Sequence record: NC_023610.1
Reading direction: 5' to 3' (one strand)
DNA length: 64,000 nucleotides
Position numbers and translations under genes: made by a program. The notes under the pieces were generated by a model. The model saw only the letters and a list, made by a program, of their open reading frames with translations. It was not told where the DNA came from and did no database searches. Each line of letters begins with the position of its first letter. The first letter of the stretch is position 1. This document shows, in pieces, positions 10,224 to 62,900 of this stretch.

Positions 10224-11189
10224 ATGGGTAACAAACTCTCTTGGGTAAATAACAACGCCCTGGCAACGAACGTGGAGATTTACCGTTCACTGACCCCGCT
10301 GGATACCGCAAACTTGTCTAACCCACTCATCACCCTGACCAATGGGGAAACGGCATGGGAAGACACGGGTGTTGTCTACGGTGCCACGTACAACTACGTG
10401 ATTCAGATGGTCACGAAAGACGGCTCTCAGAAAGCACCCACGCGAAACATTGTAATGCAAACGGGACTCGGGCGTGGTCTGGGGCCGAACCTCCTGCAAC
10501 AAGGTGATGAACGTCTGGGGTACTTCGGCTCCATCGCCGCCACCGATTTTATCCCCGCTGCCACCCTTCAGGCTTCGCAAGCCGGGTCCGGGTTGTCGGT
10601 CAGTGGAACTGCGACATGGCACAAGTTCGTCCGTCGTGGGAAAATATTGTACGTACCCAATACGTACCTGAGTTCCGCGGTCACCATGACGCAACTTTAT
10701 CAGGCTGGTTGGGTGTTCGGTACAGACGATAACGGCCCAACCGACGGACAGTTGAGTACGGCACAAAACCAGCGCCGGGTAGTCAGCTATCGCGGTGACC
10801 GGTACTTCCTCCGTCTACCGCGCGGGTACGCTGACGCCGATAACGCCAACCAGTACGACCTAAGTAATACCACCGGTCTGAATCACGATAACGTGGCGAA
10901 CACCCCTGAGTGCGAGTTCAACGACCTCTTCTATCCAGTGGTCCAAAACACGCCGTTGAAACAGCGCCTGTTCAATGTGGATAGCATTACCGCTGCCAAC
11001 TTCGTGGTATCCAGTACTCGTGCAGTGCTCTGCCAGGAAGTGAGCGTTTCGAAAGGGGCGATGTTATCGCGCGGTAACTCGAACGGGTTGACGGGAAGGG
11101 ACATCATGACGTATATGCAAGCGATTCCCACTGCCCGTGCCGCATCCACCTTGCTTTGGTACCCTGTTTTAGAGCTGATAGAGGATTAA
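10224..11189 (+). CDS. Fibre-associated virion protein, paralog B1 (FN3/Ig-like N-terminus)
   Basis: LSW....EIYR...PLD N-terminal domain; family core; ends WYPVLELIED. Confidence 0.7.
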   Translation: MGNKLSWVNNNALATNVEIYRSLTPLDTANLSNPLITLTNGETAWEDTGVVYGATYNYVIQMVTKDGSQKAPTRNIVMQTGLGRGLGPNLLQQGDERLGYFGSIAATDFIPAATLQASQAGSGLSVSGTATWHKFVRRGKILYVPNTYLSSAVTMTQLYQAGWVFGTDDNGPTDGQLSTAQNQRRVVSYRGDRYFLRLPRGYADADNANQYDLSNTTGLNHDNVANTPECEFNDLFYPVVQNTPLKQRLFNVDSITAANFVVSSTRAVLCQEVSVSKGAMLSRGNSNGLTGRDIMTYMQAIPTARAASTLLWYPVLELIED

Positions 11190-11192
11190 TGA

Positions 11193-12071
11193 ATGGCCAT
11201 CAAACTCGATTGGAAAGACCTCTCGCTTAAAGGTTATACCGGGGTAAACATTTACCGTAATGCCGGTAAGTTCGACATGAGTCAGGCGTTACCTGCTCCA
11301 CTGGTGGCGAACCTGGCGGCGAACACCGTTACGTATACCGACACCACCGCTGCGAAGAACACATCGTACAGCTACCTCATTGCCGGGGTAAAGGACGGTA
11401 AGGTTACTGGTGGTGTACCGTTCACAGCGGGGAACTACAACGACACCGGACCAGGCCCTACCACCTTAGCCCGAGGTGATTGGTTCTGTGGGTACTTCGG
11501 TGAGGTGACCAGTGCTGACCTTTTTACCACCGGCGACATCAAAACCCAAATCACGGCTACCGCCGGGATGACTCTGAATACCATCAGAACCTGGTACAAG
11601 TTCATCTATAACGGGAAAATAATCTTCACCCCGGGAATTTCTATCGGTACGGTATCCTGGTTTGCCGTCTATGCCGCTGGACTAATCTACGGTACCGACG
11701 ACAACGGAAACGTACCTCCAGCCGCTAACCCTAACCCCACACCTAAAAATCAGATGGCAAGGATGACAAAAGGTGGGTGGAGTTTTATCTTCAGAGCGCC
11801 AAAAGGGGTTGCTGCCGCAATTAACTCCCAGGTCGCCCTCTGGGCGAATACCGAAGTAATGGAGATATTTGACCGAATGTATCTCAACAACCCTGGTACT
11901 TACGGTAAGGGGAGGTTCCTCGACCTACCGGTTGTCGCAGGAATTTATACCAACAACTGGTTTGCGAATAACGTGGTCGCAATAATGGCACCGCCATCAG
12001 GACTAACCAGCAACGTACCAACCACGGCATTCAACAACTGGGTACCGGTGCTGGAGCTTGAATTCCTCTGA
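11193..12071 (+). CDS. Fibre-associated virion protein, paralog C1 (FN3/Ig-like N-terminus)
   Basis: DTGPGPTTLARGDWFCGYFG; ends WVPVLELEFL. Confidence 0.7.
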   Translation: MAIKLDWKDLSLKGYTGVNIYRNAGKFDMSQALPAPLVANLAANTVTYTDTTAAKNTSYSYLIAGVKDGKVTGGVPFTAGNYNDTGPGPTTLARGDWFCGYFGEVTSADLFTTGDIKTQITATAGMTLNTIRTWYKFIYNGKIIFTPGISIGTVSWFAVYAAGLIYGTDDNGNVPPAANPNPTPKNQMARMTKGGWSFIFRAPKGVAAAINSQVALWANTEVMEIFDRMYLNNPGTYGKGRFLDLPVVAGIYTNNWFANNVVAIMAPPSGLTSNVPTTAFNNWVPVLELEFL

Positions 12072-15244: not shown

Positions 15245-15268
15245 AAAGGAGGGCGAAAGCCCTCCTTT
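15245..15268 (+). terminator. Terminator ending the fibre paralog array
   Basis: AAAGGAGGGC-GAAA-GCCCTCCTTT. Confidence 0.8.
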
Positions 15269-15283
15269 ATGTCCGTTTGAAAC

Positions 15284-15311
15284 AAAAAAAAGAAGGAGCC
15301 GAAGCTCCTTC
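15284..15311 (-). terminator. Convergent terminator ending the minus-strand early operon
   Basis: Minus GAAGGAGC-TTCG-GCTCCTTC-TTTTTTTT. Confidence 0.8.
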
Positions 15312-15521: not shown

Positions 15522-16008
15522 TGTGGGTTCGCTCACGGACACGACCGAACAAGCGTCGAAGAAGTACACGCCAGTAGCCGTTTCCACGCGGATGACTTTC
15601 TCCCTCGAAACGCGGGTCGTGATTTTCTTCAGCCAGTGTTGCAGGGATTGCTTGCACCGGTTCAACCGGGATACTAAGGTTTGCATAGGCTGCCTCGTCG
15701 TGCTCAATTTGACGCTTCTTCTCAGCAGACATGGTCGAACGTACCAGCTCTGTCGCCATTTCGCTTTTATAGTACATGCAAATGGAATTGTTCGCCTTGC
15801 TTCGTGGACCGAAGTTCAGCACCCACAAGTTCCCTTTACGTTGCTTATTGACAGAGATGCAGGACACGTCGCGCAAATCAATCGACGCCGTACCTCCCAA
15901 ATCGTCATTGACACTATAGTTGAAATCCACCACCTTTTCCAGGTAGCGTGATTCCATACTGATGCCACACATCTTTAACAGTGATGGTGCCCCAGAGATT
16001 TCATCCAT
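15505..16008 (-). CDS. Hypothetical protein
   Basis: ATG at 16008 overlaps the DHH gene stop; GAGG upstream. Confidence 0.55.
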   Translation of the reverse strand: MDEISGAPSLLKMCGISMESRYLEKVVDFNYSVNDDLGGTASIDLRDVSCISVNKQRKGNLWVLNFGPRSKANNSICMYYKSEMATELVRSTMSAEKKRQIEHDEAAYANLSIPVEPVQAIPATLAEENHDPRFEGESHPRGNGYWRVLLRRLFGRVRERTHNERVD

Positions 16009-16966
16009 TCTCAGCCTCACTCGCAGCATGAAGTTCTTTGTTAGCATCGAAGAGCATGGCAGCAAGTGTTTCCGGCGTAATGGCGAAAATCAGCTCCACA
16101 CCTGCCGCGTTCGCATGACCACCCCCGCCCAGCTTCTCAGCCAGAAAGCGGACGTTATAGTCTTTTGAACGCAGTGAAACCATCGACCCCATTTTACGAT
16201 GGAAATAACAAGCAACCACGTCATATGAATCTTTGATGCGGTCGCAAAGTTCCGAGGTAATAGGGCGGTGACAGTTCACGACAGCCATCTTACCTGAATC
16301 GCCAAACGGCCATTCGGTCAGACAGTTATCGAGGTGGAATTGAATCTCGACATCTCGTTTTTCCTTCAACGCTTCTGAGGCTTCCTTCACGCCGAGGTAT
16401 GCCGTGGCACCCATGGTCGAGGAGAAGACACCGTCGTTAACCACGCCAACATCGTCGATTAAACGGTTGAACTCAGAGAACGGTTTGTTGAGGAAAAGGA
16501 TGAAGAACTCGTAGAAGTCCCGCGAGTCTGGAAGTTTGAACTGCCAGAGGTCACGGTCTTGTACACAAGCGAGTACATAGGGGAGCGGTGTGTCCGGGTA
16601 CAGATGCGCCCAGGTCAACCCTGCACCAGAACGTGTTCCGTCTAATGTCAGCTCAACATTAGCAGCACGGAGCACGGCTTGAAACTCTGGGCAGTCCGCT
16701 TTTGCATACGCGTCAACCATTGACGCATGATGGTCGAGGATAACAACGCGAGCAGGCTCTAACTTCGCGAGGTTACTGATTTCCTCAGGCGGCGGTGCAA
16801 AATCAACGAAGTACAGCGTATCGCCCTGACCAACTCCTTCTAACGGAAGCGGGGAGTTATAGTGGACTGGCCGGTATGTTGCGCTCGGTAACGCACGCCA
16901 CAAAGTTGCAGCGGCGGCAAATCCGTCGATGCACAGTGCGTGATAAAATACAAAAAAGTTATTCAC
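16001..16966 (-). CDS. DHH/DHHA1 family phosphoesterase (NrnA-like)
   Basis: YH..C.DG motif, YFVDF, ILDHH, DRDLW, SLRS and GGGGHANAAG DHHA1 motif. Confidence 0.9.
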   Translation of the reverse strand: MNNFFVFYHALCIDGFAAAATLWRALPSATYRPVHYNSPLPLEGVGQGDTLYFVDFAPPPEEISNLAKLEPARVVILDHHASMVDAYAKADCPEFQAVLRAANVELTLDGTRSGAGLTWAHLYPDTPLPYVLACVQDRDLWQFKLPDSRDFYEFFILFLNKPFSEFNRLIDDVGVVNDGVFSSTMGATAYLGVKEASEALKEKRDVEIQFHLDNCLTEWPFGDSGKMAVVNCHRPITSELCDRIKDSYDVVACYFHRKMGSMVSLRSKDYNVRFLAEKLGGGGHANAAGVELIFAITPETLAAMLFDANKELHAASEAENG

Positions 16967-16999: not shown

Positions 17000-17278
17000 T
17001 TAAACGGATAGGAATTGCTTTGAAGAATCGCGCAGGGCCAGAACGTTAAAGTGACCGCTGCTAATTGTGTTAATGATGAAGAACGCATCCTCAGGCTCCT
17101 CTATTATTTTATCGCAGTAACGTCTCGGAGTACGGCGAGTGAATCGTGCTTTCATGGAGCGCGCGCACTTCTTTATTTTCCGAGCATTACCATTATTAAA
17201 ATGATAACAGAGGGTGATGGTTGAGAGGAAATCAATTATCTCTCCCACTTCCTGATAGTCAAAGTTATTCACAGACAT
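17000..17278 (-). CDS. Hypothetical basic protein
   Basis: 92-aa ORF in operon context, locally AT-richer. Confidence 0.55.
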   Translation of the reverse strand: MSVNNFDYQEVGEIIDFLSTITLCYHFNNGNARKIKKCARSMKARFTRRTPRRYCDKIIEEPEDAFFIINTISSGHFNVLALRDSSKQFLSV

Positions 17279-17343: not shown

Positions 17344-17589
17344 TTACCACCGCCGTTTCTTACCCGGAAGATTCCAGCTGGTACCGTTCGAACGGTTAGG
17401 GTTTCCGCGCAGTAGCGCCACCCGTAGATTGAACATGGGGTCCTTTTTAGCCTGTTCCTCCAGTTTTTGCTGGCGCACATAACGCTGCACTAACTGGTTC
17501 GCCACCTGCTTTACCTTGTCGCTCACCGGGTCTGGACCCTTCTCAGTGGTGAGGGTGGTAAGTGGTAAATGCTCTTCTTTATTTTCCAT
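17344..17589 (-). CDS. Small protein with basic C-terminal tag (D)
   Basis: MENKEEH... ending NRSNGTSWNLPGKKRRW; AAGAAGGGG RBS. Confidence 0.6.
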   Translation of the reverse strand: MENKEEHLPLTTLTTEKGPDPVSDKVKQVANQLVQRYVRQQKLEEQAKKDPMFNLRVALLRGNPNRSNGTSWNLPGKKRRW

Positions 17590-17863
17590 GTTTACGGTGC
17601 CCCTTCTTGCGGTCTGGTACCGGGTAGGCGAATGTCCCATCCGGGTTCGTTTGGTAATGACGCCGGGAGTTCTGTGGCATCTTGTCTTTTTTACCTAACC
17701 ATACAAAGCTCATCTTTTCCTCCTTCGATTGCTTTTCTTCAATAGCCGAGATAAGTTCAATAACCTCCGACATCGACATATATTCGATGGCGTCGAGTAT
17801 CAGTTTCTTATCGGCGGCCGAACTTTTGTTTTGCTCGTGGGAAGACCATCGTCCCTTTGGCAT
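17579..17863 (-). CDS. Small protein with ribosomal bL12 (L7/L12) N-terminal-domain-like helix and basic C-terminal tag (C)
   Basis: AAGGAG RBS 10 nt before ATG 17863. DKKLILDAIEYMSMSEVIELISAIEEK aligns without gaps to E. coli bL12 [27 protein letters not shown]. Confidence 0.7.
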   Translation of the reverse strand: MPKGRWSSHEQNKSSAADKKLILDAIEYMSMSEVIELISAIEEKQSKEEKMSFVWLGKKDKMPQNSRRHYQTNPDGTFAYPVPDRKKGHRKHGK

Positions 17864-18683
17864 TGGTAACCAACTCCTTGCGTTGTTTGCCGTTCACCGT
17901 GATGTCACCATTGACCCGTTGACGCGCTGAACCGAAGGTGTTAAGTAGACTACGGCAACCAGGACTGGAACCGAAGGGGTCAGGGATATCCAACGTTACC
18001 GCCTTCACCCCACCGTCAAGTTTATCAAGCGAGCGCTTTAGACGCGCACTTGGTTCGTTGGGTCTAATCTCGTTCAGGTACTGACATTGAACGTCCCGGT
18101 CAATGGGGTCCAGTGGCAAGTCGACGTCACGCAACCAGTTAGGTAAAGAGTCAATCTCAATGTTCAGTGCATCGGGGTGACCCTGACGACTTTTCACAAC
18201 GCCGTACGAGACAACCTGCCCGTCAATCATACGCGGCGAGATACTGATTTCGACGTCGGCTTCTTTACGACCCAAGCCTAACTCGTCAAATTCTTTATTC
18301 CAGTCTGTCGGGGTCGGTGCCCGCATCGTAAGAACCTTGAAGCCCGCCGGTTCATTGGCCATCCGTGCTTTAATGCGGTCAAAGAGTTCCTGACCATGGC
18401 GATGTTTAGCGGAGATGTCAGGGTAGTCTGGCATCCGTTCGGCCATCTCAGCCATCATGCGAATCTTCTCTTCACTAAGATGCGGCGCAATCATTTTCAA
18501 GAATTGGGCGAAGTTAGGAATTTGACCGTTGGGGAACAATGCTGCGTTGGCGGAGACCTTACTGCCATCGAGAGCCCGCTCTAGCGCCGCTTCCATTGCG
18601 TCGGGCGAGTAGCTTACCCCATTGCGATTAGGAACGTTGAGTGAACCAATATTCAACGATACGCCTTTATCTTTCTTTTCCAT
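17808..18683 (-). CDS. Hypothetical protein with basic C-terminal tag (B)
   Basis: 291 aa, TAATG coupling to upstream gene; ends ELVTNAKGTMVFPRAKQKFGRR. Confidence 0.7.
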   Translation of the reverse strand: MEKKDKGVSLNIGSLNVPNRNGVSYSPDAMEAALERALDGSKVSANAALFPNGQIPNFAQFLKMIAPHLSEEKIRMMAEMAERMPDYPDISAKHRHGQELFDRIKARMANEPAGFKVLTMRAPTPTDWNKEFDELGLGRKEADVEISISPRMIDGQVVSYGVVKSRQGHPDALNIEIDSLPNWLRDVDLPLDPIDRDVQCQYLNEIRPNEPSARLKRSLDKLDGGVKAVTLDIPDPFGSSPGCRSLLNTFGSARQRVNGDITVNGKQRKELVTNAKGTMVFPRAKQKFGRR

Positions 18684-19039
18684 TATCTTCTTCCTCTGCG
18701 TTGTTTGGGTGCAGGCCAGGCCATAGTCCCGGCGTTGTTCATCATCAGTTCGCGACGGCCATCACTACGTAAACGCTTACCTTCTACCGGCGAACCTAGT
18801 TCAGCAATACAGTCTAAGTTCTCGACCTTACTGCGTAAACCCCGGGCATATTCCTCAGTATTGGGGAAGAGCCCTTGACTGTGACGCATTTCCCTGAGCA
18901 ACGCCCCACCAATACTCCCCATCCCAGCCCCAAGAACGACCACCTTCCGTTCCTTAGGGTCAATAACGAATGGGCCTTTCTCCCCGTTTTTAATCGCATC
19001 TTTTAACGGGTCGAGCCAATTCTCTTCTTCGTCCATCAT
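18683..19039 (-). CDS. Hypothetical protein with basic C-terminal tag (A)
   Basis: GGAGG RBS; ends ELMMNNAGTMAWPAPKQRRGRR. Confidence 0.7.
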   Translation of the reverse strand: MMDEEENWLDPLKDAIKNGEKGPFVIDPKERKVVVLGAGMGSIGGALLREMRHSQGLFPNTEEYARGLRSKVENLDCIAELGSPVEGKRLRSDGRRELMMNNAGTMAWPAPKQRRGRR

Positions 19040-19113
19040 TCCTCCAATGAAAATAAAAAAGACAGCCGAGGCAGAGTAGCCCGAAGGCCACCCTACCTAC
19101 GACCATTCTTCAC

Positions 19114-19548
19114 TTAGCGCGCGGCCCAGGTACGCTCAACACGACCACGGTTGCGCATGACACGGTCTTCTTGCTCCAGGTCCACGACGCGACGGCGACG
19201 AGAGACATCGGCAAAGACTTCCGTTGCCACTTCAGGGTCCAGTCGATATTGGTCGACTAAACCGGTAACGGCTTCCAGCTCTGGGTTAGTGTTATCCGCT
19301 AACGCGTTCGTCCGGTGGTCGTCAATTCTTGAGGTGATTTCTTCAAGGTCGTGACGGTCCAGAAAACGTTGAGCCTGGCGATGGATTTGAATATCCCTTA
19401 CGTTGCCGGGGACAGATGGTTCGTTGAAAGTTTCGATAACCGCTTTGACGTCATCAACTGGTACACCTTCGTAGGCCGAAATCATGTCATCGGTGAACCC
19501 ACGTTCATGTGCAGTTAGGACGCGCTCAGTAATGCTGTTCATTGACAT
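19114..19548 (-). CDS. Hypothetical protein with HTH-like N-terminus
   Basis: AAGGAG RBS; preceded by a long AT-rich intergenic region. Confidence 0.7.
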   Translation of the reverse strand: MSMNSITERVLTAHERGFTDDMISAYEGVPVDDVKAVIETFNEPSVPGNVRDIQIHRQAQRFLDRHDLEEITSRIDDHRTNALADNTNPELEAVTGLVDQYRLDPEVATEVFADVSRRRRVVDLEQEDRVMRNRGRVERTWAAR

Positions 19549-46781: not shown

Positions 46782-47546
46782 TTATTTCAGCCAGCGGGTC
46801 ACTGCCGGTTGGGCATTCGACAACTGGTTCTTCTCCAGACGCTTCACGGCATCCAGAGTTTGTGCGATGCTGCTCTCTACTGCAACACCCTGGGACGTAC
46901 GACGTTCTGCCATGGCACGGATTACAGGCAGGTTGGCTGCCACGCGCTCGATGTCCTGGAAACTTTCGCACGACGGGGAATTGTACTTGGTCGCCACATC
47001 CAGGCCCGGTTCGTTCACCACGTCCCAGGTAATGATAGCATCCAGGTACTTGCGCTTTTTCCCAGCGACGTATTTGTCGGTCGCCATTGAACGAATACTG
47101 AAGGCAAGGTTCGCCGACGGGTTGTTCAACAGACGCTCGACCACGTGTGCGTGTGGACCATCCGGGCAAATCTCACCCATGATAGCGATACACTTACGGC
47201 CGTCGTTCAGAACATGGTTAGAGTCAATCCACACCTTACGGATATGGATGGCCACGTTCTTTTCCAGGATGGTGTGGATGCGCTCTACGTAGTCATTGTA
47301 GTCACGACATTCACGCTGAGGTGGATGCCCCAGCTCACCACGTAAGAACCCTTGCGAGATACGGCGCATGAACACCGACCCCTGACGCAGGAACTCGCGG
47401 GCACGCCCTTCGTCGTACACCGCCCCGTAGCTGTTTGGGTGCTCCAGTGCTCCGAGCACGACTTCTACGTAGCCGTTGTCCAACCGTTTGATTTTACCGG
47501 TGTTGTTCACACCTTTGAGCACTGTGCACTCGAATGCCGTTGACAT
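46782..47546 (-). CDS. Prohead (head maturation) serine protease, phiKZ gp175/SPN3US gp245-like
   Basis: LRGELGHP (catalytic His), LAFSIRS (catalytic Ser), TWDVVNEPG (Asp) motifs; synteny with vRNAP genes. Confidence 0.85.
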   Translation of the reverse strand: MSTAFECTVLKGVNNTGKIKRLDNGYVEVVLGALEHPNSYGAVYDEGRAREFLRQGSVFMRRISQGFLRGELGHPPQRECRDYNDYVERIHTILEKNVAIHIRKVWIDSNHVLNDGRKCIAIMGEICPDGPHAHVVERLLNNPSANLAFSIRSMATDKYVAGKKRKYLDAIITWDVVNEPGLDVATKYNSPSCESFQDIERVAANLPVIRAMAERRTSQGVAVESSIAQTLDAVKRLEKNQLSNAQPAVTRWLK

Positions 47547-47561
47547 TCCTCATTCCCCTCT

Positions 47562-48290
47562 TTACCAGCGCGATGTCCAATCCGGCGCGCCGTCGTAGTT
47601 CAACAACGCAGCTTTTCTTTTTTTCCAGGTTTCATACGCTTCACGCGTAATCGCTTCATATCTAATCTCTTGCTGCTGATAGCGGTTCGAGTAGTAAGAA
47701 TCGAAGAACGGAATCGAGAAGTGATGGAACCCTTTTAGTAGCCCGAGGGTGTTATCCCACGGAACTTCCTGGTCCCCGAAGATTTCCAGATAAATGTCAA
47801 CTTCCACGTTAATGGCGTGGTCATCTTTCTGAATCTTGATGGCCTGAATAAAGAACTTCCCGACTTGTTGCGCCGGGTATTGCTGCTCTTCTTCCAGGTA
47901 ATCCACCAACCACCGCTCACGGCACCACTTCGCCATCGGAGCCATGGACGGTTTAGGGAACACCGAACTCTGGTACGGGATAGCGTAGAGGGTGTAACCC
48001 CCCAGCCAGTCATCGTCCCCGGCACAGGTTGCTCGGTCTTTCAGGTAGTCGCGGGCCATAACGGCATAGCCGCGGATACAATCAAGAATGGTCACCCCAG
48101 TACAGACACGCGGAACAAGTTCGTCTTCCGACTCCATCGTTCGTTGAATCTTGCGCGGGGAGAACACCTCAATTGTCTTGTTGGGGGAAACGTGGTACGT
48201 GACCCCGGGCTTGGGGTCAAGTTCCAATCCTTGCAGCACGTGAGGAGGTTGACGCAGGAGGTAACGCAGCATTTCTACTTCATGGTCCAT
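47562..48290 (-). CDS. Hypothetical protein with YHVS...PR...ED...PRVC motif
   Basis: GAGG RBS; motif seen directly. Confidence 0.65.
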   Translation of the reverse strand: MDHEVEMLRYLLRQPPHVLQGLELDPKPGVTYHVSPNKTIEVFSPRKIQRTMESEDELVPRVCTGVTILDCIRGYAVMARDYLKDRATCAGDDDWLGGYTLYAIPYQSSVFPKPSMAPMAKWCRERWLVDYLEEEQQYPAQQVGKFFIQAIKIQKDDHAINVEVDIYLEIFGDQEVPWDNTLGLLKGFHHFSIPFFDSYYSNRYQQQEIRYEAITREAYETWKKRKAALLNYDGAPDWTSRW

Positions 48291-48302
48291 TGTGCGCCTC
48301 AC

Positions 48303-49028
48303 TTACGTTCGAAGGATAGATTCCATTTTACTGACTTTGTCGCTAGGGTTCACGATTGCCGAATCAAGGCCTTCCGCCATGTAACTACCGGTTACCTTCG
48401 CCGTGGTGTCCTGTGCCCCGAACTCTACGTTACGGAGCGGAACCCACGCTACCCGGTCAGAGACGTCTTCCGCTACCTTCTTCAGGATTTCACGGATAGG
48501 ACGACGACGGTCAGCCATCATGCGCGCAATCTGCGCAATAACCATTTCCCCTACCGCAGGCGTTAACACCAGACTGGACCCGGCGTACTTCAACATCAGG
48601 TTGAAGAACTCACCCAGGTCTTCGTAGGTGTAATACCACGGAATACGGCCACGCGCCACAATCTCTTCAACCAGGTAATAAAGGAGGATGTTATCCTTCA
48701 CCAGGTCAGTGGACTTCACGAGGATTTGTCCCGGTTGGAACCGGAACTCGTAGTACTCGCGTTCGTCAATGGTCGTGGTCACCGTCTCAGCAGGATTCAA
48801 ACGAATCATGGCCGGGATAGTGTAAACGCCGTACTCGCCGCTATCGAGGATTACCGAGAAGAACCCCATGGACAGGGTGTCCCGTCCCATTGTCAGCAAC
48901 TGCTTCGAACGGAAGGTTTCCGGGACGTGAATCCTACAGGGTTTGAGGACTGCAAGAGACCCGTCCGGGAGTTCTTTCAAGGCAGCGACAACGACGGCGG
49001 GATTACGTTTCAGTTTGGTAATGTCCAT
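48303..49028 (-). CDS. Conserved virion protein, candidate small vRNAP subunit (SPN3US gp244-like by position and size)
   Basis: 241 aa between the protease and vRNAP beta; IPWY..YEDL motif. Confidence 0.5.
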   Translation of the reverse strand: MDITKLKRNPAVVVAALKELPDGSLAVLKPCRIHVPETFRSKQLLTMGRDTLSMGFFSVILDSGEYGVYTIPAMIRLNPAETVTTTIDEREYYEFRFQPGQILVKSTDLVKDNILLYYLVEEIVARGRIPWYYTYEDLGEFFNLMLKYAGSSLVLTPAVGEMVIAQIARMMADRRRPIREILKKVAEDVSDRVAWVPLRNVEFGAQDTTAKVTGSYMAEGLDSAIVNPSDKVSKMESILRT

Positions 49029-59900: not shown

Positions 59901-62900
59901 TTGTAAAGGTGATTTGTTCTACCGTGGCTTCTACTATTCCGGCGTCACCGGGAAACCGTTGAAGACCCTCGGGGACATTGATGGCGATATCATCACTTTC
60001 GACAACATCTCGGGCGAACGTAAGGTGGTCATCTCCAAAGATGAAATCGAACGGGGCCTGTACGACTCACGTGGCAACAAACTGACTTCGCTCTTGACCA
60101 AGTTCAAGAATGCAGCCGGTTGGGCGCGTGATAAAGTCAAAGGGTTGTGGAACGCACCGAAGCGTCTGCTGGATTGGGCGAAGAACGGTATCAAGGGTAT
60201 CGGTACCGGACTGGGTAAACTGTTGGGTGGGACAAAACCGGAGATTGGTCAGACCTACTGGCTGAAGCGCATCTTCCACCTCCTCTACAACAAGTTCTCA
60301 GGGAAGCCGTTAGGTGAAGGCCTGAGTGAGGCGTTGAAGGAAACCGGGAACAAGGTGGGTGAAGCGGCGTCCCGACTGAAAGACGAAGCCGTGGCCAAAG
60401 GACGGAAATGGTGGAATTTCGGTCGGAGCAAGTACGACGAGGCCAAAGGGTCGGTTGCTGCGCAGAAAGCCGCAGAGTACCGTGACCAGTTGAAGGAGCG
60501 TTCAGGTTCCTGGCTCAACCGTCAAATCGAAGCAGGAAAGAATAAGTACCACGCTTACCAGGCAGGGAAACCCCTGGGCGATAAGAAAGAAGGTATCTTC
60601 GGGTTACTGAAGAATGGCTTCGGACTCATCGGTGGCGTGCTGATGGGAATCAAGCAGGGCTTCGGGACCTTTGCCGGGAAACTCTTTGGGTGGTTACCAA
60701 AACTCCTGATGGCAAAACGGGGCGCTGACCTGGCAGGTGACATTGCGGATGTGGCCTCTGGTGCAGGCGGTCGTGGTCGTGGTGGTTTGTTACGTCGTGG
60801 TGCACGTGCGTTAGGTAAAGGGGCATGGTGGGCTGCGAAAGGCTTGACGGTTGGTGGTGGCGGGATGTTACTGCGTGGTGGGATGGCACTCGCTTCCATG
60901 GCGGGTGGTCTGCTGTCTGCGCCGGTTGTCCTGGGCCTGGCTGTTGCGGGTGGTGCTGCTTACCTTATCTACAAAGGGTGGAAAGCCTACTCTGAACGTC
61001 TCGACCTGATGCAGCGTATGCGTCTGGCGCAGTACGGTGCAGACCTGGGGAACAAAGAGCAGTGCGGTAAAATCCTCGCCTTCGAGGAAACGGTACTCTC
61101 CAAGTATACCCGGACTGACGGTAACGGTGGTGTAACATTGCAACCGATGCCGTTCGGCGAATTGATGCAGGCCTTCGGGGTTAACCCGTCTGCACGCTTC
61201 ACCGTTCACAACTGGGCCAACTGGTTTGACCGTCGCTTTAAACCGGTCTTCATCAAGAACGTGTCAGAACTGTACAAAGTGAGCCCGAAAGGAAACCTCG
61301 CGAAGTCTGGGAGTTACGACAACGGCTTGAAACCACAACTGGCGAAGGCCACGAAGATTGAGGCACCGGCGAGTCAATCGCCGTACTACGTGCAGCAGTC
61401 ACCGTTCCCGAACCAGACCAGTCGTACGGGTACCGCCATGGTTGATGCAACTATCGCGGCAGTGGTCGAAGAATACGGTAAGGACGAGAAGACCTACCGT
61501 GGTCGTCAGGAAGTGCAGGAACAGCAGAAAGGGAAAGTGGCAGTCGATGCCAACGGGAACTATCTGGCTGCAACGACCGTTGACCCGGATGCGAAAGTCA
61601 TCAAAGGACAGAAGCTCACTTACCAGGCCGGACCAAACAACCGTATCCTGGACCAAATGGGTGGGTTGGGTGACCGTTCGACCATGGCACGCATTACTGG
61701 TGACCAAGCGACGGACGATGCGTTGTTGAAGAACAACCGCATTGATGACCTGACCTCTATCCGACTCAAGGTGTACGGCTTAACCAGCCTCGACCGTATT
61801 TACGTCGATACCCTGATGCAGTTCGAACGGGACATGTATCAGAACGTCACTGTCGCCAATAACGGCGTGGCGTCTTTCAACGGTAATGCGGACGACGTGT
61901 ACAACAAGTACTGTGCGAAGTTCAGTTTGGGCTTTGGTGATACCGATGCCCGTATTACGTGGACGACGTGGTTCCAGAACCGCTTCCTCCCGGCGTTCCT
62001 GAACTTTGTGGCGCAGACCAAGAAGATTAACCCGAACCAGGACGTCTTCACCGCGTGGCAGTCGTACAAAGCGGCTGACCTGCTGAAGATTGCCAACTTC
62101 GTTTCCGATGCCCGTGCAACGGTTAACGGCCAACGCATCAGCGTGTGGGCAGTTAAGGTGTCTCCATTCCCTGGAGAAACCGCAGGAACGGACGGAACGG
62201 TTATCCAGAAGAACCTGGAAGTCTTCAAGCAAGCGCAAGAGAAAGAACAGTACCAAGAGTCGGAAGCCGCAGCGCGAGCTATTCGTGAGAAGTACACGGG
62301 CGTAAAAGTCAATGCACTCTCCGATAAAGGTCGTGTTGAGCTAACCAGTCGGGTTAACAACCTGATGGCGGACATGGCGAAAGCCACAGGGAACACATCA
62401 GGGTACCAAGGGATTCCGACTGGGGGTGCGTACGGTACCTCGTTTGAGTCCGCAGGGACCGGCGGGATGTACGGGTCCGGTAATGTGCCGAAGGTGAAAC
62501 TCTCGGGTTCAGCCAAACAGCACGCGGACACGGCAATGAAGTTTGCACAGGCGAACGGGATTGCCGGAGAAGAGTTGGCGTTGTTCATGGGAACGCTCGC
62601 ACACGAGTCCGGTAACTTCTCTGCAACACTGGAGAAAGGGTCGGGCGCGAAGTACGAGAACAACAAGAACCTCGGGAACACTCAACCTGGCGACGGGGAG
62701 CGGTTTAAAGGTCGTGGTTGGATTCAGTTGACCGGGCGTAACAACTACGCTCACTACGGGAAACTGACCGGTCTCGACTTGTTGAATCACCCTGAGCTGG
62801 CAGAGATTCCAGAGAACGCCAACAAACTGGCAGTGGCCTACTGGCAAGACCGAGTCATTCCGATGATTCGACAGAAGCGTGCGAAGTTCGATGTTCTGAG

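Follow-up and report, generated by a model that had tools for sequence, protein, structure and literature searches.

What do several small and otherwise unrelated proteins of a jumbo phage gain from ending in the same basic peptide? The question is raised by a locus in a 64,000-nucleotide stretch of DNA (the window), which matches Erwinia phage PhiEaH1 (genus Iapetusvirus, record NC_023610) at 100% identity and covers bases 62001-126000 of the 218-kb genome, with record base 62001 as its first base. The annotated products include a PhuZ tubulin and a nuclear shell protein, along with split multisubunit RNA polymerases, which marks PhiEaH1 as a chimallin-encoding jumbo phage. Four open reading frames (ORFs) form the locus, gp093, gp092, gp091, and gp090, all annotated as hypothetical (Table 1; positions refer to the window unless a contig is named). 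A preliminary description of this DNA, whose ORFs, sizes, overlaps, and C-terminal strings are exactly as quoted there, proposed that all four share a basic C-terminal tag that acts as a portable address label. The analysis presented here finds a shared module in gp093, gp092, and gp091, better conserved than the bodies that carry it. With a probability of roughly 0.3, this module serves as a basic docking unit whose partner is polyanionic and conserved; the large ribosomal subunit, close to the stalk, is the likeliest candidate.

When the whole proteins are compared pairwise by BLASTP, only the tails align (gp093 with gp092, E = 5e-6; gp093 with gp091, E = 5e-6; gp092 with gp091, E = 0.006). 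Across all six frames of the complete PhiEaH1 genome, a tail hidden Markov model (HMM) scores the three proteins at 68-79 bits and the next best segment at 8 bits. These HMM and regular-expression scans covered every stop-to-stop segment of the genome, locus by locus and unassembled. The strict pattern N-x-x-G-T-x-x-x-P near the C-terminus, combined with a basic end, occurs in three of 4986 such segments, namely gp093, gp092, and gp091; one further near-terminal match to the strict motif lies in a non-annotated frame and lacks the basic end. The common stretch is longer than first described, spanning 35-40 residues from a conserved Gly about 30 residues ahead of the end. In the orthologue alignment, five columns are invariant across the three paralogue types (Asn, Gly, Thr, Pro, and the Gly preceding the terminal basic pair), and three further columns are nearly invariant. 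One profile recognises the A (gp093), B (gp092), and C (gp091) copies of PhiEaH1 and of the contigs L008, L009, and L011 at 67-79 bits, with noise at or below 8 bits. By these alignments the three tails are homologous and constitute one old paralogous module. The module is also, by the same measure, a domain family of its own, as one profile covers the three paralogues with their orthologues and the family is absent elsewhere. Searches of Pfam, PDB, PHROG, NCBIfam, and PADLOC with the module return no matching family, and the weak matches in PHROG concern the bodies only.

The fourth gene named in the preliminary description, gp090, does not belong to this family, while the kinship of the other three holds. 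Against the module, hhalign gives gp090 a probability of 0.1%, and the tail HMM finds no match in it. Its N-G-T...P string is missing in its orthologues and arises with a one-residue insertion relative to them. Membership of gp090 is rejected, and on this comparison its resemblance is a chance match. The protein has a conserved C-terminal motif of its own, unrelated to the module, in which an invariant Lys-Asp-Pro-Met ... Arg-Gly-x-Pro-Asn-Arg is followed by a run of Lys and a terminal Trp. Short basic tails are common in phage proteins, and gp090 illustrates how readily they resemble each other by chance or composition, with no common origin or function behind the likeness. For gp093, gp092, and gp091 this explanation is refuted, and its residual probability is negligible, by the BLASTP and HMM scores given above and by orthologues that stay nearly invariant despite many synonymous changes.

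The known family is tiny, comprising about ten contigs worldwide and two cultured phages. Searches by tblastn with A, B, C, and the upstream neighbor gp094 against 50,697 phage records return PhiEaH1 and vB_Ea277G only, and no cultured phage outside Iapetusvirus. Among metagenome proteins, gp092 has eight homologues besides that of vB_Ea277G itself (35-64% identity), gp093 has four, and gp091 has a few; a full-library phmmer search with gp093 yields five representatives. IMG/VR contains one PhiEaH1-like contig. JGI metagenome contigs contain no carrier, all 22 pattern matches being chance matches that fall mostly in non-coding frames. In about eight related metagenomic phage contigs, A, B, and C retain their order. 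The syntenic metagenomic contigs compared here are L008, L009, L010, L013, L014, and L015, plus the short L012. In the first six, the order is constant and runs from gp094 through a hairpin, A, B, C, and gp090 (D) to an ORF of the DUF7740 family and a DHH phosphoesterase. The DUF7740 ORF is present in six of the seven syntenic loci, with none called in L008. The 101-kb contig L011 belongs to a different, distantly related jumbo phage, in which a UvsX-like recombinase and large phiKZ-type PHROG families are recognised. Two genes after its A-type carrier, L011 encodes a 250-residue protein (11110-11862 (+)) whose basic, Gly-rich end with Trp-Pro loosely resembles the module. The module profile does not detect this end, and the look-alike is degenerate and non-significant.

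Across these relatives the tails are preserved far better than the bodies. Mean pairwise identity of tail versus body is 0.89 versus 0.49 for B, 0.71 versus 0.32 for A, and 0.97 versus 0.51 for C, and the last 33 residues of copy B are nearly invariant in nine orthologues. Between phages, the C module accumulates 7-19 synonymous versus 0-3 non-synonymous codon differences, and the B module 12-14 versus 2-5. Purifying selection on the module is clear from these codon counts. Within PhiEaH1, the paralogous tails are only about 50% identical in DNA, which argues that the copies are old and did not arise from recent duplication or conversion. This divergence, together with the excess of synonymous differences, points to selection acting on the peptide and not on an RNA or DNA signal. 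The gp092 and gp091 frames overlap by 56 nucleotides, and those of gp091 and gp090 by 11 nucleotides. The B tail is still conserved in L013 and L015, where the overlap with gp091 is gone; the overlap is therefore not the cause of its conservation.

The bodies follow a different course. In L015 (1694-1828) and L013 (5783-5917), gp091 is a 44-residue protein made of the module only. The L015 gene has an AGGAGG ribosome-binding site upstream, and the two module-only genes differ from one another by 12 synonymous and 0 non-synonymous codon changes. In L008, gp092 is shortened by about 50 N-terminal residues. Loss of the gp091 body and shortening of gp092 indicate that the bodies are dispensable while the module is not. 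The module hardly changes while the bodies drift, shrink, or vanish; for this reason it looks like a functional unit in its own right, and we infer that the tail behaves like an effector and the bodies like accessories. A portable C-terminal element on otherwise unrelated bodies and under strong selection, as the preliminary description had it, is thus borne out for three proteins, whereas its view of the bodies as cargo sits poorly with genes that have discarded or trimmed them.

Under the address-label proposal, the tail would direct the bodies to a single site built by the phage. That site might be, for example, the nuclear shell, the import machinery of that shell, the early infection vesicle, or the interior of the procapsid. 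Peptides at the C-terminus that target proteins to capsids or encapsulins are well established, with examples in the capsid-targeting tail of HK97-type prohead proteases and the cargo-loading peptides of encapsulins. Like these, the PhiEaH1 element is short, modular, C-terminal, and common to otherwise unrelated proteins, and the phage does encode chimallin and PhuZ. However, such tags are dispensable for the activity of the cargo itself and make no sense without cargo. The PhiEaH1 module, in contrast, is better conserved than its bodies and persists alone under selection in the 44-residue proteins of L013 and L015. Nor do its genes lie beside shell or capsid genes; they sit in a run with a DHH phosphoesterase, PhoH, and ThyA, away from the head genes, and none of the three products is annotated as a virion protein. 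A label would be expected on many or all proteins of a compartment, but the regular-expression and HMM scans of all six PhiEaH1 frames find three carriers only, and the replication and transcription proteins of the phage lack the tail. A genome-wide tag is rejected on this count, and with it the claim that the tail labels many cargos. A general nuclear-import signal is likewise unlikely. In the PicA/Imp import of chimalliviruses, established in other phages, cargo is recognised by residues on its folded surface and not by a terminal peptide (PMC12908238). Taken together, these observations make an address label of any kind improbable.

The gene arrangement brings in the main rival to docking, an assembly element, which we regard as possible but unlikely. 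In this scenario, the three modules would bind each other, perhaps with a nucleic acid at the center, so that gp093, gp092, and gp091 form a single hetero-oligomer. The module genes are always three, adjacent and translationally coupled in a fixed order (one base is common to the gp093 stop codon TAA and the gp092 ATG), and each paralogue type is invariant among its own orthologues while distinct from the other two, as would suit three subunits of one complex. Confinement of the module to these genes in PhiEaH1 and retention of a module-only gp091, as expected of a needed subunit, fit the same picture. The charge of the modules speaks differently. All are strongly basic, with a net charge of +7 to +8 in copy C, and self-association of such peptides is disfavored without a polyanion. 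In addition, L011 has one clear copy only.

The preferred reading, docking on a polyanionic partner, takes its direction from gp091. Known-domain searches of all bodies against Pfam, PHROGs, NCBIfam, PADLOC, and PDB profiles return nothing except a bL12 N-terminal domain in this protein. When the gp091 family profile is searched against PDB, all ten top matches are bL12 N-terminal domains (E = 3.1e-5 to 0.28), which upholds the likeness already noticed in the preliminary description; the stronger of them, from which the link to the ribosome is drawn, lie at E = 3.1e-5 to 6e-4. The alignment pairs gp091 residues 17-45 with chain residues 2-30, and by manual count from the profile alignment, 14 of the 29 residues equal the Escherichia coli bL12 chain. 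Pfam PF16320 (Ribosomal_L12_N) remains below its gathering score of 25 bits, with 16.8 bits in PhiEaH1, 21 bits in L009, and no match in L008. In tblastn searches of phage records, Salmonella rplL shows 54% identity over residues 19-44 at E of about 10, which is not significant alone. Enterobacterial rplL, whose sequences came from mis-filed bacterial records among the phage records, is the only other match that covers the segment among the non-self tblastn matches. No match to the bL12 hinge and C-terminal factor-binding domain (Pfam Ribosomal_L12, which we take to be the C-terminal domain of bL12) is found in gp091; instead, the basic module starts after about 10 residues. The likeness needs the 94-residue form of gp091 (start 17863), which is called in vB_Ea277G and in metagenome gene calls. 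In RefSeq, PhiEaH1 gp091 has 66 residues (start 17779), and the bL12-like segment is thereby cut in half. As far as profile comparison can tell, the body of the long form is truly similar to the bL12 N-terminal domain.

Proteins with bL12 pieces have been described in other phages (Mizuno et al., 2019; PMC6375957). There, as in gp091, a probably host-derived piece of bL12 is fused to unrelated sequence, and homologues without the bL12 piece also exist in both cases. The domains described match Pfam Ribosomal_L12; according to the authors, they retain the residues in contact with uL11, EF-G, and EF-Tu, and they were found only in genomes below 80 kb (PMC6375957). PhiEaH1 gp091 differs in having only the N-terminal domain, responsible for dimerisation and uL10 binding, in being encoded by a 218-kb chimallin-encoding phage, and in carrying the basic module in place of the C-terminal domain.

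The sequence of parts in gp092 and gp091 also suggests a possible origin, one that would be compatible with the other readings. The gp092 module, with the bL12-like start of gp091 directly after it, might be what remains, in worn form, of an rplJ-rplL junction captured from a host, in which the C-terminal part of uL10 is followed by the N-terminal domain of bL12. A degenerate DNA pattern for the A/B-type core, searched in 596 gigabases of bacterial genomes, matches only the uL10 of two gammaproteobacterial metagenome-assembled genomes (L040 1268-1798 (-) and L041 4137-4685 (-)). These matches lie just before the bL12-binding helix, with rplL next, which mirrors the phage order. Aligned with that uL10 by hhalign, the module profile gives a probability of 49% and E = 1.7e-4 over 21 columns, a circular figure because the target was chosen by the pattern. 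About two chance matches are to be expected, and beyond the nine residues that the pattern forces, almost nothing agrees. The corresponding stretch of E. coli-type uL10 is different and does not resemble the module, and the module profile matched no uL10 chain in PDB up to E = 10. The uL10 stretch moreover lies in a helical region, whereas the module is predicted as a hairpin. Given the circular test and the expected chance matches, uL10 as the source of the module is treated as a coincidence, and descent from an rplJ-rplL junction is doubtful.

How the module might act can be outlined as follows. It would fold as a short beta-hairpin, with the turn at Asn-x-x-Gly-Thr, an aromatic-Pro after the second strand, and Arg/Lys arms flanking it, and it would make residue-by-residue contact with a polyanionic partner that is itself highly conserved. 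AlphaFold2 places a hairpin across Asn-x-x-Gly-Thr in both gp092 and gp093, and within the gp093 model the tail has the highest confidence, with a predicted local distance difference test (pLDDT) score of 55-69. The only PDB look-alike of the module is a strand-turn-strand piece of a cupredoxin, an unrelated protein (E about 0.5); the likeness fits a strand-turn-strand shape. Basic extensions of ribosomal proteins and arginine-rich RNA-binding hairpin peptides are likewise short, very basic, and extremely conserved. The module shares these properties and the predicted hairpin with Arg/Lys arms, but searches of PDB and Pfam detect no similarity in sequence to any such extension or peptide.

Invariance residue by residue on drifting bodies, combined with strong positive charge, fits a peptide buried at its interface with an unchanging partner and suggests a docking unit for a conserved polyanionic host structure. 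The most likely partner, named with low confidence, would be the host large ribosomal subunit or its ribosomal RNA near the L7/L12 stalk. This target is favored because of the bL12-like anchor in gp091 and because ribosome-binding proteins are known from chimalliviruses. The three translationally coupled proteins gp093, gp092, and gp091 would act jointly, their N-terminal bodies serving as accessory anchors or modulators and not as cargo. The bL12-like part of gp091 would be an optional second anchor, which would put the module on the stalk (uL10) where bL12 otherwise presents its C-terminal, factor-recruiting domain. Precedents come from chimalliviruses, some of whose proteins bind host ribosomes and stalk proteins (PMC11849849; PMC13282480), and from phage bL12 domains that enter ribosomes (PMC6375957). 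Among the former, the early proteins phiKZ gp014 and Churi gp335 bind the host large subunit via conserved Arg, Lys, and Trp residues (PMC11849849). They too come from nucleus-forming jumbo phages; no sequence relationship with PhiEaH1 proteins was found, so that the comparison is by analogy only.

Several observations weigh against docking on the ribosome. The module profile matched no ribosomal or RNA-binding protein in PDB or Pfam. The bL12-like part, the sole pointer to the ribosome, is weakly constrained: it evolves fast, with 21 of 26 residues differing between PhiEaH1 and L008, whose copy Pfam misses, and it has been lost in L013 and L015. In addition, gp091 has a 16-residue N-terminal extension that bL12 does not have. 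The AlphaFold2 models, made from shallow alignments, are poor overall, with a mean pLDDT of 41 for gp092 and 48 for gp093. In L011 only the A-type carrier is clear, and other copies are not. DNA, anionic lipid, or an acidic protein surface would be equally plausible partners for a basic peptide.

The features of the locus are collected in Table 1.

Table 1. Genes, module copies, and neighboring features of the PhiEaH1 locus, in window coordinates.
Feature	Position	Strand	Description
gp093 (A)	18683..19039	(-)	118 aa; variable body with small Gly-rich h-h-h-h-G-A-G stretch and C-terminal module; orthologues P0011-P0014
gp092 (B)	17808..18683	(-)	291 aa; body without recognisable domain and C-terminal module
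gp091 (C)	17579..17863	(-)	94 aa, long form; AAGGAG 10 nt before ATG
gp090 (D)	17344..17589	(-)	81 aa; conserved neighbor with own basic C-terminal motif ending in Trp; outside the module family
Module copy A	18686..18799	(-)	Final 38 residues of gp093
Module copy B	17811..17924	(-)	Final 38 residues of gp092
Module copy C	17582..17701	(-)	Final 40 residues of gp091
bL12 (L7/L12) N-terminal-domain-like segment	17729..17815	(-)	gp091 residues 17-45; family profile versus PDB
gp094	19114..19548	(-)	144 aa; best-conserved protein of the cluster
Hairpin followed by U-run, terminator- or attenuator-like	19051..19115	(-)	Between gp094 and gp093; conserved
DUF7740 ORF	17000..17278	(-)	92 aa; conserved downstream neighbor; absent from RefSeq annotation
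DHH/DHHA1 phosphoesterase gp089	16001..16966	(-)	Conserved downstream neighbor in the same minus-strand gene run

Two of the bodies carry features of their own. In gp093, residues of about 31-47 (18900-18950 (-)) form a hydrophobic strand followed by G-A-G and glycines, the only conserved feature of this body. The stretch resembles the start of a dinucleotide-binding fold, for which the protein is far too short. Residues 8-37 of gp092 (18560-18650 (-)) contain the motif G-x-L-x-x-P-N-x-x-G-x-x-Y, which also opens the head maturation protease gp139 (46782-47546 (-)). A relationship between the two was considered too weak to be used (hhalign E = 0.013, probability 3%; PHROG E = 0.064), and the motif region is missing in the L008 orthologue of gp092.

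Upstream of the module genes, gp094 has a mean column identity of 90% and is 81-94% identical in relatives where gp092 is 35-64% identical. Its sequence, which likewise terminates in a basic stretch, matches nothing in Pfam, PDB, or NCBIfam. The hairpin and U-run between gp094 and gp093 are kept in L008 (9504-9590), L009 (9539-9629), L013 (4436-4516), and L014 (4085-4164). The z-scores of the hairpin range from -3.3 to -7.2, and the stem is preserved by paired base changes in four relatives. The hairpin may act in termination, attenuation, or processing and in this way set the dosage of the module genes. Downstream, the 92-residue ORF matches DUF7740 at E = 1.6e-9 and is annotated in vB_Ea277G. 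The minus-strand gene run that includes gp089 ends at terminator-like hairpins (15245-15311). The window contains no Rfam families or transfer RNAs, and a scan for sigma-70-type promoters gave matches not above shuffled expectation. Elsewhere in the window, RefSeq gp141 (47817-48566 (+)) lies wholly inside the minus-strand genes gp140 and gp142 and is probably a spurious call.

Carried to its full extent, docking near the stalk would mean that the GTPase-associated center of host ribosomes is remodelled by a small clade of nucleus-forming jumbo phages, through a set of three proteins that share one new basic hairpin module. A captured bL12 N-terminal domain would let one of the three plug into the L7/L12 stalk and present the module at the place normally taken by the factor-recruiting domain. 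This extended scenario is unlikely as a whole; if true, it would amount to phage-customised ribosomes. The pattern itself, useful whatever the target, is that of an invariant peptide on fast-evolving, dispensable bodies. It is the signature of a virus that hijacks a conserved hub, and it singles out the 40 residues that deserve study. If the module does dock on the ribosome, it would represent a new route to alter translation, in which the working end of a stalk protein is swapped rather than a whole ribosomal protein added, and it would offer a compact natural peptide for structural study, 44 residues long in two relatives.

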